The notes under the pieces were generated by a model. The model ran no database searches and was not told the origin of the DNA. It saw only the letters and a list, made by a program, of their open reading frames with translations. From positions 3,224,001 through 3,288,000 of the forward strand of contig JAQFVV010000010.1 in assembly GCA_028023455.1 (NCBI GenBank): 64,000 nt of DNA, written 5' to 3'. This document shows, piece by piece, positions 23,001 to 53,726 of the stretch (within the stretch, counting starts at the first letter, position 1; each line of letters begins with the position of its first letter). The position numbers were made by a program, and so were the translations under genes. The DNA comes from Epiperipatus broadwayi. Lineage: Eukaryota; Animalia; Onychophora.

Positions 23001-26000
23001 GATTAAATAGAATTAGGAAAGAAACAAAAAAAATTACTAATGAAAAAACTAAAAGAAAAAATTGAATAGTGAATAGTATTTTTTTTGAAAGTAGATATTT
23101 TGAAAGATATTTTACAAAGATTGTAATGGAAGATAGAAAAATATATGATCATGTAGAAAGTGTAATTATACTTATTTAAGGCAGAGAACTAAGGCTAAAG
23201 AGATATGAAAGTGTTTCAAAACTATAGAACAAGCTTTTTTATATGTGGTTGAAAATATTAATTAGCAAAATTATAAATAAAATCAAAAATCATTAAAGTT
23301 AAAATTAATTGTCATCCTTTTTGCAGATAAAATAAATGTTTTTGTGTTTGCTATATTGATATATATTATGCCAAATAAAATCACACTCAAATATATAAAT
23401 CTTTTGTTTCTAAATAAACTCAAGACAAAAAGCTATTATGGGCTATTAGAACAAATAGTTTAATTTAAGAGCTATCAATAATAATTAATAATTATCTAGC
23501 AACCTCATTGCTAATCTATTTCTCTAAATATTCCTACCCATTCTTTTTTTGTTACATATTGTAACCAGTTGGTTACATAGCTGCACTAGAAAAAAATAAA
23601 TAATTATTTAGTTGGCAGCATGTTCCTCAGGTTTGAGAATAAAAATTATTTTATTAATGGGGGGAAATAATATTTAAATTTTCTTAGGTCTATTTTTAAA
23701 GGGTCATTATTTAACTCAATATATATATAAAATTCCCATATGATAGTATGAGAATTTCCAAACCTTAAATATATTTAAGAGTTTTTTTTTTAAAAAAAAA
23801 AAAAAAGAAAGAAAGGGAATAATAATAATAATATTTTAATTTTATTAAAACATGCAAAACTCTCCATACAGTATTGCCACTCAATGCAAGCCAGAAGGCT
23901 TGTGCATAAAATCCCCATCTAGTGCCTACTCATCCAATATCCTCAGACTAGTTTCTGGCTTGTGGCCTTTGTCAGTGAGGAGCCTTGTGTCTGAGAGCAC
24001 TGCACCTAGGTCTTAGGATCTAATGCAACCCTCCAGAAGCCACCTTTTATCTACTTAACTACAAAACTATGAGTCTTAATTTGAAAACACAATATTTTCA
24101 ATCCAAGCTCATTAGCTTATATAACCATATGTGTCTGAACTCAGTTCAGTACCCATACATTTTGATGTCTTTGGTTCTTTAATAACCATAGGGTTGCATT
24201 AGATCCTGAGATTTAGGTGCAGTGCTCTCAGATCCAAGTTACTCACTGATGAAGGTCACAAGCCAGACACTAGTCTGGGAATATTGGATGAGTAGGCACA
24301 AGATGGGGATTTTATGCACAAGCTTTCTGGCATCCATTAATTATTTCTGGCTTGCATTGAGTGGCAATACTATATGGAGAGTTTTGCCTGTTTTAATAAG
24401 TTATAAACAAGCATAAGAAATGGTGATCATGTAATGTTTATTGGCTTAAAATCAATCCTGCCTAATAGGATAGTGGTGGCTATGGTTATTAAAGAACCAA
24501 AGTCACCAAAATGTATGGGTACTGAACTGAGCTCAGACCTATATGGCTATATAAGTTAATGAGCTTGGATTGAAAATATTGGTGTTTTCAAATTAAGACT
24601 CATAGTTTTGTAGTTAAGTAGAGATAAAAGGTGGATACTGGATAGTTGCATTAGATCCTAAGATGCAAGACTCCTCACTGATGAAGGCCACAAGCCAGAC
24701 ACTAATCTGGAGATATTGGATGAGTAGGCACTAGATGGGGATTTTTTTGCACAAGCCTTCTGGCATTTATTGATTATTTCTGGCTTGCATTGAGTGGCAA
24801 TACTATATGGAGAGGCACTAATTTAATAACAGTTATAAGCAAGCATAAGAAATGGTATTCATGTGATGTTTATTGTAAATTTTATTTTTAATTAATTTCT
24901 TTATCTCTTTTTAATGAAAAAGAAAAATCAAATCAGTGCAATTAAGTGATTTTCTCATTTTTTATTGCAAGATTTTGTTTTTAATTATAAAGGAATGTCA
25001 AGAATTTTATATTAATTTAAGTTCTTGACTTGTTTTCAATGTCTATGATTAAGGAGGGAATTGAACAATTGTATTTATGAAATTTTATCTAATTAGTTAT
25101 TAAAATTATCATGTAAGAGATAGATTCCAATCAGCTTGTGGGCATGATTGTTCTAAAAAATATATGTGGGGGTGTGAATTAGTGATATTACTCAAATGTC
25201 TGGTGAGGGTAACTGTTGAAGAGATAGCAGACAAGTGTTAATCCTGATGCTGAAAAAGACAGTAGGAAAAGACATTATTCCTAACTTAACTGTTGAAGAG
25301 AAAGCAGTGAAGTTTTAATCCAACTGCTAAAGAGAAAGAAGAGAAGTTTTTACCAAACTGTGGCATAATAGAGCAGGAATCTTAACCAGGCTATTGCATA
25401 TAATATCAGTTTAATCAATGTTTTAGCATACTATGAGTAATCATAAACATGGTTCATACAATGAAAACCATGTCCTAAATTCAGCTAAAATCTAGGCATC
25501 ACCTTTCTCCATGTGACCTACCTTCACTGGAAAAAATGTAGGAAAGGTAAACCCTCCTAAAGTAGTCTGCAATCGTGCCTTCAACTAAGAGCACAAATCT
25601 GTCTCTTACCTGGAAATTCAAGAGAACCAAATGGACAAAAATTGATACTTTTCATTTACCTGGAGTTGCTAAAGACCCAGGAAAGAACAAATTTAACCAG
25701 GCCCATATTTAGAAGCCTTTAGTGAAAAATCCCATCAGAAGCAACTGGAAAGCCCTGCACAAACAAGAAAGACATGGCTAGAGATATTATTTTTTATGTG
25801 TGCACACTCTATTACATTATTGTGATATGTGTTTTTAAGGTTAAATGATAATGAATTCATTATTGTACAACTTTATTTGATTTTTTGAAACTATAGATTT
25901 GATGTTAGAATGTCAAAACTACATTAGATTGCAATGACTTCTCCCTACATTAGAAAGAATTCTTTATAAGTTTTCAAAAATTAATGGATTTTGAATAATA

Positions 26001-50583: not shown

Positions 50584-51014
50584 ATATATATTAATGATTA
50601 TTTAGATACTATGCCAGTGCTTAAATTTAATCAACTGCTTTGTAATCATTTGAATACTAGATTTCCAAAGGAAGATATAGATGACTGGAATGCCTTGGAT
50701 CCTTTTATAATGAAAAATAACATAGAGCATGGAAAAGAGTCTAAAAGGTTTATTTGTAAAAAAAAAATATAAATCCATAATAAATAATAATGATAAAAAT
50801 CATATACGCTTATATATAATTTTAGAACAGTATGGTAATGAAATTTTTAGTGAATGAAAAAGTTAAAATTGAAGTAATCAAATTATTTAATGATTTAGTT
50901 TCCATATGTCTTAAAAGACCAAGAATATAAAGAGTTTTTGGTACTTGTTATTTTTGTGTGATTTTTCAAGCTTCCAGCACCAATTATGAACATGATTTTA
51001 GTATAATGAATACA

Positions 51015-51837
51015 GTCAAATATCAGCCTTTCACGCTAATTGTGCATACGCTTTGCAAGTGTTAATAATAAATGAATACTTTCTCATCAATACAAGATAT
51101 AGTATTTATGCAGGAATAAAAGGAATCATCTTATTCCTACGACTCAAACGCTTATATATGAGCAAATCTGAAGTACTGGCAAAGAAAGTGTGACGATGGA
51201 ACAGTCACTTTAAATTACTATATATAATGTCTGAATGAATGACGTCGCTGAAATTATCTAGAATTTACTAAACATCATTCCAACTGAAACTTAATAATAT
51301 GTAAATAAGCATTTATTTTATATAGTGAATGTAAACAATTGTATTACAGTCAAATATCAGCCTTTCATGCTAATTGTGCATACGCTTTGCGAGTGTTAAT
51401 AATAAATGAAAGTAACACTCGCAAAGCGTATGCACAATTAGCATGAAAGGCTGATATTTGACTGTAATACAATTGTTTACATACACTATATAAAATAAAT
51501 GCTTATTTACATATTATTAAGTTTCAGTTGGAATGACATTTAGTAAATTCTAGATAATTTCACCGACGTCATTCATTCAGACATTATATATAGTAATTTA
51601 AAGTGACTGTTCCATCATCACGCTTTCTTTTCCAGTACTTCAGATTTGCTCATATATAAGCATTTGAGTCGTAGGAATAAGAGGATTCCTTTTATTCCTG
51701 CATAAATACTATATCTTGTATTGGTGAGAAAGTATTCATTTATTATTAACACTCGCAAAGCGTATGCACAATTAGCATGAAAGGCTGATATTTGACTGTA
51801 ATACAATTGTTTACATACGCTATATAAAATAAATGCT
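51015..51837. mobile_element. Palindromic concatemer of a 334-nt monomer, 13-bp TSD
   Basis: tacagtcaaa at 51011 and 51345; tttgactgta ending 51466 and 51800 (period 334 on both arms); inversion point 51410-51413; tataatgaataca at 51002-51014 and 51838-51850. Confidence 0.92.
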
Positions 51838-53726
51838 TATAATGAATACAATAAAATCAAAATTCCATAATAGTACTCTTTTATAATGAACATTTGGATA
51901 ATGTAATAATAATTAAGTATTATATCTTGTCAGAAAAGCAAATAAACCTAGACAGTTATAAAATTTGAGTAAATCATAAAGAATGATATGAAAAAATAAA
52001 GAACTAATTATTATTATTGAGTTATTATTTTTAAATTATGTTCTATAATTTTCATTACATATAAACTATTTGGTGCACCAACTATTTTATATGAAAACAT
52101 GCAAATAAATTCTATAATTTGATGTCTTTATATATTTTTTGTTGCACATTGTTTGGTTTACTGAGCTCAGCTCTTGTATTTTTAGCTCAGAAACAGTCAA
52201 CTTTTAGAAGGAACTGTGGTATTCACCTATCTATTAATGATTATAATTCTTTATGGAAAGGCAGCACAATTGCAGATCAGAGAATCTCACCAGAATCAAA
52301 TCTTTATTTAAAAAATGAAGTACCTAAGTTATTCAGGGATTAATTTATCTATTCATTTATTGGCAGTTTAAGTATTATAATCAATTTTTTACCATCTTTA
52401 TTAACACCTTTTAGATTGTTCCATTCAGTTAAAAATAATTTATTTATTGCATATAAATTAATATCTTAATATTGGATGAACTCATTTTGCACTTTTAAAA
52501 TTTACTACAAAACTCAGAAAGGCTGATGCTTAAATTTTTATAGATTTGTTGTATAACTAAAAAAATATTTTTGATTTCTTTTACCATCTTAATATCACTC
52601 TTCCTTTTTTTAATCTCAAATTGATTATGCAATTATTTGCTTGTTATTTACATCATCTCTGAAATGAAAATTGTTTTTCGCTCCACCACTTTGTCTTTTG
52701 TTATGGTATAAAACAATGTGTTTTCTCCACTTGAGTTTTTTTTAATGATCACTATCTATTGCAACAATCATTGGGTTCCTTAATTAATTATTTTGCCTGT
52801 TATATATCTATTAACTTTGCATCAATTCTTATCCAAGAAGATTTTTTCTATCTTTTACTATTTTTATTATTTTGTGCTCTCACTATTTTCTTTCTTTTAG
52901 TCTTTTGTTGTTTATTTGTTTTTAAACATTTTTTGGTATACCCATTTTGTTTTAGTTTACATCTCATCCTCTCTAAGTTATAGTAACTTTAATTATAAAG
53001 CAAATCACTCAATTCTCTAGCTTATATAATACATGACAAAATAACTATAATGCCATCTTTAATCAACTAAAATGATTAGTGATTCCCATATTGTTCTAAC
53101 TTTCAGGAATGAGACTCTTGCACTCCTATCTGATAACCACTTATTAGTCTTTCTATAAATGGCACTGGAGTAGAAAGCTGCTATGATTTTATCATGCAGT
53201 AACTTTACTTTTTCTTATCATGTTTTGCTTTAGTTCTGGACTATACTTTTTTTTTTTAATACATTTTAAATATAATTTTTTTTAAATGCTTTCTCATTGT
53301 GATCTGGTATTTATTATCATTGTTTATTTGTTAAAAATATTTTTAAATTAATTTTAAAAAGCTGTCTTATGTTTTTAATAATTAAAGATGGATTATGTCT
53401 AAATTTGAATAATTTAAAATGTTCAAAAATGAAAATAATAATGATGTAATTATAAGAATCTATTCATAGTTGATACTATGAAATTTGAATTATAAATTTG
53501 TCTTAAGTTTTATTCATTAATCTTGCTTTTTTATTATTACCATATAATTTGTTAATATTCCAATTATTGTTAACTGTAGAAAGTTATTAAAACCAGAAAA
53601 ATAATATTGCTGCTAGTGATTGGATGTTACATTGATTATCACATGAAGTTACATCTTGATAAATAGGGGGGTCTTGTAATTCATCTCAAATCTTTTAAAA
53701 CATCAAATCTAACTAAATAGTTTTCT

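Follow-up and report, generated by a model that had tools for sequence, protein, structure and literature searches.

A high-copy 334-nucleotide repeat unit with no recognisable hammerhead and a Penelope-type insertion footprint in the onychophoran Epiperipatus broadwayi

The genome of the onychophoran Epiperipatus broadwayi contains an insertion in which a noncoding unit of 334 nucleotides (nt) is repeated in two inverted arms, each longer than one unit, and the locus raises the question of whether such a permuted, concatemeric copy had to be made from a circular RNA. The insertion lies at 51002-51850 of a 64,000-nt stretch (GenBank assembly GCA_028023455.1, contig JAQFVV010000010.1, positions 3,224,001 to 3,288,000 of the forward strand), hereafter the window, to which all coordinates refer. 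The original prediction for this DNA took the arrangement to imply a circular template, with a monomer that may be processed by a different or unknown self-cleaving motif or by host enzymes. We favour a different answer, at a probability of about 0.68: the unit would represent a non-autonomous, noncoding, high-copy retroelement family that lacks a hammerhead ribozyme and is inserted by the machinery of Penelope-like elements (PLEs), which combine a telomerase-like reverse transcriptase with a GIY-YIG nickase.

The insertion is an 830-bp near-palindrome (51011-51840) in a window of 26.7% G+C. Its inverted arms are 97% complementary over 388 nt each (51011-51398 and 51413-51800), with 14 nt between them, and the inverted match reaches out to 51410 on the left and to 51840 on the right. 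If the unit is numbered so that positions 1-334 correspond to 51011-51344, the left arm (51011-51410, 400 nt or 1.20 units) covers unit 1-334 followed by 1-66, and the right arm (51413-51840, 428 nt or 1.28 units), read on the minus strand, covers unit 295-334, then 1-334, then 1-54. The period of 334 that had been predicted, and the excess of both arms over one unit, are confirmed by internal direct repeats at a spacing of exactly 334 nt, of 66 nt at 97% identity in the left arm and of 94 nt at 99% identity in the right. In the sense direction, which runs from the centre outward, the inverted left arm lies on the minus strand and consists of a 66-nt partial upstream unit (51410-51345) and a full 334-nt unit (51344-51011); the direct right arm lies on the plus strand and consists of a 54-nt partial upstream unit (51413-51466), a full unit (51467-51800), and an extension of 40 nt (51801-51840). 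This extension, which we call the tail, carries the unit sequence further than the left arm does at its own 3' end; the left arm has no tail and finishes in ...GACTGTA.

The outer ends of the arms are thus offset by exactly 40 nt in the unit, in agreement with the earlier observation that the arms begin at different unit points, and the inner ends, at unit 66 on the left and unit 54 on the right, lie 12 nt apart. The unpaired centre (51399-51412, 14 nt) reflects this second offset, as 51399-51410 are 12 nt of unit sequence belonging to the left arm only and the AG at 51411-51412 fits neither arm and is filler. Alignment of the arms with each other shows 12 differences in 388 positions, of which 8 are transitions and 4 are transversions. 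The arms are therefore almost identical, as had been noted, but the insertion is better described as fairly young than as brand new.

A perfect direct repeat borders the insertion, with TATAATGAATACA standing at both 51002-51014 and 51838-51850 (13 of 13 positions identical); at 27% G+C the chance of such a match is about 0.31^13, or 2e-7, per alignment. The last 4 nt of the left copy (TACA) are also unit 1-4, a junction microhomology, and the first 3 nt of the right copy (TAT) are also the next letters expected of the unit, so the true target-site duplication is 6-13 bp. Deletion of 51015-51850 leaves an unbroken reading, ...FQASSTNYEHDFSIMNTIKSKFHNSTLL, and two DNA contigs of one public run connect approximately position 50933 to 51840, bypassing the insertion as a paralogous empty site would. 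The claim that excision restores the C-terminal motif of a hAT transposase stands as far as the continuity of the reading across the site, but not as to its identity, as Pfam did not recognise the restored flank peptide, including a 79-residue version of it, as hAT.

This arrangement has a close published counterpart. PLE insertions are 5'-truncated and form partial tandems, or pseudo-long terminal repeats (pseudo-LTRs), often with an inverted 5'-truncated copy adjoining the 5' end and with a tail of 30-40 bp at one end (PMC8557442); in Adineta vaga, the target duplications measure 8-10 bp, one of the inverted pseudo-LTRs bears a tail of 31 bp, and palindromes at inverted junctions occur together with microhomology joints (PMC3846280). 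The one-end tail of 30-40 bp is unique to PLEs (PMC8557442, PMC3846280, PMC11167929). In vitro work with purified PLE protein has shown nicking and extension on both strands of the target; reverse transcription begins at two adjacent internal sites whose spacing corresponds to the tail, and the template is an unprocessed multi-copy RNA, hammerhead mutants of which insert equally well (PMC11167929). The Epiperipatus insertion has a partial unit before the full unit in each arm, head-to-head arms with a palindromic junction, a 40-nt tail on the right arm alone, and a short duplication with 3-nt and 4-nt overlaps with the unit, although its 13-bp repeat is somewhat longer than the duplications of Adineta vaga. 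It shares the partial tandem, the near-palindromic head-to-head layout, the one-end tail, and the priming of both strands with insertions of Penelope, Naiad, and Chlamys and with those of MRC1 of Chlamydomonas. The Naiad and Chlamys clades are especially close, as they leave the same footprint without a canonical hammerhead and have non-autonomous derivatives, which in Chlamys form multi-copy head-to-tail insertions (PMC8557442); the lack of a hammerhead and the multi-copy head-to-tail insertion of short noncoding units are features that Naiad, Chlamys, and MRC1 have in common with the unit described here. Since the layout is the published PLE footprint and the hammerhead is dispensable in vitro (PMC11167929), the circular template and unknown self-cleaving motif that the layout had been taken to imply are not supported.

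The window itself provides a second example of this footprint. The element at 23842-24875 bears hammerheads and is likewise arranged head to head, with its hammerhead strands facing outward; its two arms differ by 44 nt at their 3' ends, the inverted one stopping at ...TTTTAATAA and the longer, direct one at ...GTTTATTG. The idea that the 334-nt unit has the same architecture as the hammerhead family is therefore borne out at the level of the concatemeric head-to-head layout. At the level of sequence, local alignment of the unit to the two hammerhead-bearing elements of the window gave scores no better than those of shuffled sequences. Since head-to-head arms and a 40-44-nt tail are found in two unrelated families of the window, the comparison points to one integration machinery for both. 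We note that the target duplication of 23842-24875 resembles a decayed TAA(A)TTTTATT.

We hypothesize the following course of insertion. A nickase would have cut the two target strands about 13 bp apart, and each freed 3'-OH would have primed reverse transcription of the unit RNA from one of two start sites 40 nt apart, the tail at 51801-51840 marking the second of these sites. The unit RNA would have been linear, starting inside one unit of a tandem donor and continuing into the neighbouring unit, and each cDNA would have reached its 5' end after some 400-430 nt, which would give a partial tandem like a pseudo-LTR. Finally, the 3' ends of the two cDNAs, at unit 66 with a non-templated AG and at unit 54, may have templated each other and so closed the near-palindromic centre. 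The polarity of target-primed synthesis, the position of the tail, and the orientation of the hammerheads in 23842-24875 together imply that the RNA sense is the outward strand, plus in the right arm and minus in the left; by the same polarity, the cDNAs would correspond to the opposite strands, plus on the left and minus on the right. The outward strand is also the one that folds more stably than shuffled sequences. Neither self-cleavage nor an RNA circle is required at any of these steps.

Two aspects of the layout bear on this scheme directly. First, each arm holds sequence that the other lacks, namely the 40 nt at the outer end of the right arm and the 12 nt plus AG at the inner end of the left, and the two strands are thus likely to have primed cDNA independently. 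We considered a fold-back, self-primed origin for one of the arms and rejected it on account of these private sequences, since a self-primed copy would either enter inverted flank or miss the 12 nt. Second, the arms stop at nearly one and the same point of the unit, their inner ends being 12 nt apart, and this favours a linear RNA with a fixed 5' end over a circle; two random stops on a circle of 334 nt would come this close with a chance of about 0.075. Transcription from a fixed site in one unit into the following one is also the proposed origin of pseudo-LTRs, as the Penelope pseudo-LTR includes the transcription start (PMC8557442). The left arm begins at TTCATTT, and a TATA-like sequence, CATAAATA, is found some 32-35 nt upstream of it, which in DNA so rich in A+T is only suggestive.

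The 334-nt unit is part of an abundant family and was found in public runs of two organisms. In the comparison of one DNA run with 50600-52250, 8598 contigs were placed, and the summed word depth was 4e4-9e5 over the unit versus about 1e2-1.5e3 over the flanks. Many inverted joints occur at differing unit positions (51049>51569, 51118>51644, 51178>51700, and 51221>51702, for example), and these non-mirror joints indicate head-to-head copies elsewhere with variable 5' truncation. No further copy of the unit was found in the window by BLAST, and two exact-pattern scans of metagenome contigs and one of viral contigs gave chance matches only, of 18-25 nt.

Several observations weigh against insertion by PLE machinery or limit what can be claimed for it. 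The hammerhead of the canonical PLEs (Penelope/Poseidon, Neptune, Nematis, and Athena) is absent from the unit, and, unlike in autonomous PLEs, no frame for a reverse transcriptase with GIY-YIG was found at the insertion or elsewhere in the 64-kb window, where 10 of the 11 open reading frames of at least 85 residues were searched with Pfam. The PLE start sites used in vitro have no homology to the nicked DNA, whereas microhomology of 3-4 nt is present here at both junctions. Simple 5' truncation predicts that depth should peak at the 3' end, but the maximum is at unit 138-205, in the conserved core of the unit. In addition, 70 DNA contigs stop at 51687, at the tip or loop of an AGGAAT.../...ATTCCT hairpin within that core, and this break may be a second 3' terminus or the boundary of a module common to another family; the 334-nt family may accordingly be a mosaic, or may share a module with another element. 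The public data also consist of Logan contigs rather than reads, and in contigs transcript ends, strand, circularity, and back-joints are invisible. As a separate observation, the 70 contigs part from one another beyond 51687, where their sequence is A+T-rich and heterogeneous (consensus agreement 0.45).

Among the alternatives, the one that survives best is a retrozyme-like cycle, in which an unrecognised self-cleaving motif or a host nuclease would release a 334-nt circle that is reverse transcribed by rolling circle and integrated by a PLE enzyme. Metazoan non-LTR retrozymes are tandem A+T-rich units of 150-450 nt with a type I hammerhead that are expressed as circular RNAs, and circles with high expression are documented for animal retrozymes of 170-400 nt that carry a hammerhead (PMC7229834); the metazoan retrozymes have recently been argued to be non-autonomous derivatives of PLEs (bioRxiv 10.64898/2026.07.22.740005). 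The unit resembles them in its size of 334 nt, its low G+C, its noncoding and concatemeric nature, and a target duplication of more than 4 bp, and a period of exactly 334 in arms that both exceed one unit is what a circle of that length would give. It differs in that their defining feature, a type I hammerhead in each unit, is absent by every test that we ran.

The search for a ribozyme covered both strands and, since the two arms together span all circular permutations of the unit, every possible point of opening. Rfam gave no match in the whole window at the gathering threshold, and at E values up to 10 it returned for 50900-51950 only microRNA-hairpin artefacts of the palindrome centre and no known ribozyme family. 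The CUGANGA string is absent from both strands, as first reported. We also applied two hammerhead descriptors, one for the full type I form and one for the minimal dimer type (PMC4209133), in which the 3-8 pair may be of any Watson-Crick type and at most one core mismatch is tolerated. Neither matched either strand of either arm, a negative whose sensitivity is unvalidated because the window has no intact hammerhead to serve as a positive control; the decayed hammerheads elsewhere in the window were not picked up by the descriptors, and mononucleotide shuffles of the unit gave 0.085 matches each. One candidate, a single ATGAATA (the A3-U8 core string), stands on the inward strand at unit 62-68, where neither helix II nor GAAA follows it, and we judged it to be a chance match. 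ARAGORN found no tRNA-like gene, and a scan for bacterial-type promoters and terminators was uninformative. The absence of a recognisable ribozyme that was originally described is thus confirmed by Rfam, the string search, and the descriptors alike; it is real as far as known classes go, and it calls for no new mechanism.

What remains in favour of a retrozyme-like cycle is RNA structure and possible expression. The outward strand is more stable than shuffled sequences (z of -2.95 and -1.90), and the inward strand is not (z of -1.16 and -0.15). RNA-library contigs of two organisms contain 30-41% of the sampled words of the unit, but in the libraries labelled 'RNA?' (X6 and X7) and in the unlabelled X8 the profile is as in DNA, and the excess of unit over flanks is no larger than in DNA. 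Moreover, ordinary PLE insertions, which involve no circle, also produce partial tandems (PMC8557442, PMC8969392), and a circle does not predict that the two arms should stop only 12 nt apart in the unit. We therefore regard a circular intermediate as unlikely. That the conserved core of the sense strand (approximately 51608-51719) might hold an undescribed self-cleaving or self-processing motif, replacing the hammerhead in a retrozyme-like circular-RNA cycle, is very improbable.

Twin priming by L1 produces an inverted and a direct segment, with microhomology and a target duplication that varies between about 7 and 20 bp, and a LINE (long interspersed element) or other non-PLE reverse transcriptase acting in this way on a tandem-repeat transcript is another candidate origin of the insertion. 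As in L1 inversions, two cDNAs from both strands of a staggered break would have been joined at the centre. The insertion departs from that model in that poly(A) and microsatellite tails are missing from both 3' ends, the two arms share one stretch of more than one unit, and the offset of the 3' ends is a fixed tail. The head of RNA polymerase III type (tRNA, 7SL, or 5S) and the A-rich tail that mark short interspersed elements mobilised by LINEs were likewise not found by ARAGORN, by Rfam, or at the 3' ends. An offset of 40 nt corresponds to the PLE-specific tail (PMC11167929), and the unrelated hammerhead family in the window has a similar one of 44 nt, which makes twin priming by a non-PLE enzyme improbable.

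Two further explanations invoke DNA rather than RNA. In the first, repair of a double-strand break would have captured a satellite or extrachromosomal circular DNA, and the palindrome would have arisen through hairpin or fold-back repair. This would be in keeping with a highly repeated unit, junction microhomology, and the 2-nt filler, but it does not account for a clean 13-bp duplication, asymmetric arms with a 40-nt tail, or the recurrence of the same footprint in an unrelated family of the window, and we consider it very improbable. Least probable is a fold-back element or miniature inverted-repeat DNA transposon with long subterminal repeats, in which the TACAGTCAAA end would be the Tc1/pogo-like terminus that it resembles: the arms are long and inverted and TACAGT stands at the left boundary, but the insertion ends (...TACAGTC on the left and ...ATGCTTA on the right) are not the inverted copies abutting a fixed-length duplication that such an element has, the complement of the left end being reached 40 nt before the right boundary; 13 bp are duplicated instead of TA; both arms exceed one unit, which they copy in permuted form with an exact period; and inverted junctions elsewhere occur at many positions. 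We know of no cut-and-paste superfamily that a duplication of 13 bp, or of 6-13 bp, would fit.

Within the unit, conservation and abundance are highest, as judged from the depth table, at 51608-51719 on the plus strand (mirror 51104-51215), a stretch that contains a GTGAC/GTCAC hairpin, a TATATAAG box, and the AGGAAT.../...ATTCCT hairpin of 11-14 bp. An 'RNA?' run of organism B holds an abundant variant with G->T at 51675 and C->G at 51697, both partners of one pair in the longer hairpin; the change from G-C to U-G retains pairing, a single case that is weak evidence for structure. A subfamily with a longer loop in the GTGAC/GTCAC hairpin, at 51597-51630 (mirror 51181-51214), largely retains the stem, and loose ends that mirror each other occur at 51205 and 51606, in 17 and 18 contigs.

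The surroundings of the insertion are themselves repetitive. The flanks (50600-51001 and 51851-52250) are multi-copy too, with a summed DNA depth of about 1e2-1.5e3, and motifs in one frame of the flanks (KEVRWLS and S..YE.DFS) resemble a decayed hAT transposase, which Pfam does not confirm. A Pfam search (E up to 0.01) of 10 of the 11 open reading frames of at least 85 residues in the window found no domain, and the window looks like decayed repeats without an intact gene. The target site (51002-51014) and unit 58-70 (51068-51080 and 51731-51743), where the arms meet, have the 9-mer AATGAATAC in common. This could hint at a target preference for sequence like that of the element; the chance share of such 9-mer matches in A+T-rich DNA is estimated at about 0.2-0.3.

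The PLE-type footprint is a structural kind already known, of which the hammerhead-less 334-nt family is a new member. If PLE machinery is responsible, the family would have spread to high copy number with a full Penelope-type footprint and without a hammerhead, while neighbours that have the same footprint carry one, and would be a natural counterpart to the in vitro finding that the ribozyme is dispensable for PLE integration. With its independent arms, its 40-nt offset, and its 2-nt filler, this clean insertion may serve as a worked example of both-strand priming and cDNA joining, and it cautions that a concatemeric, permuted insertion need not imply a circular RNA template.

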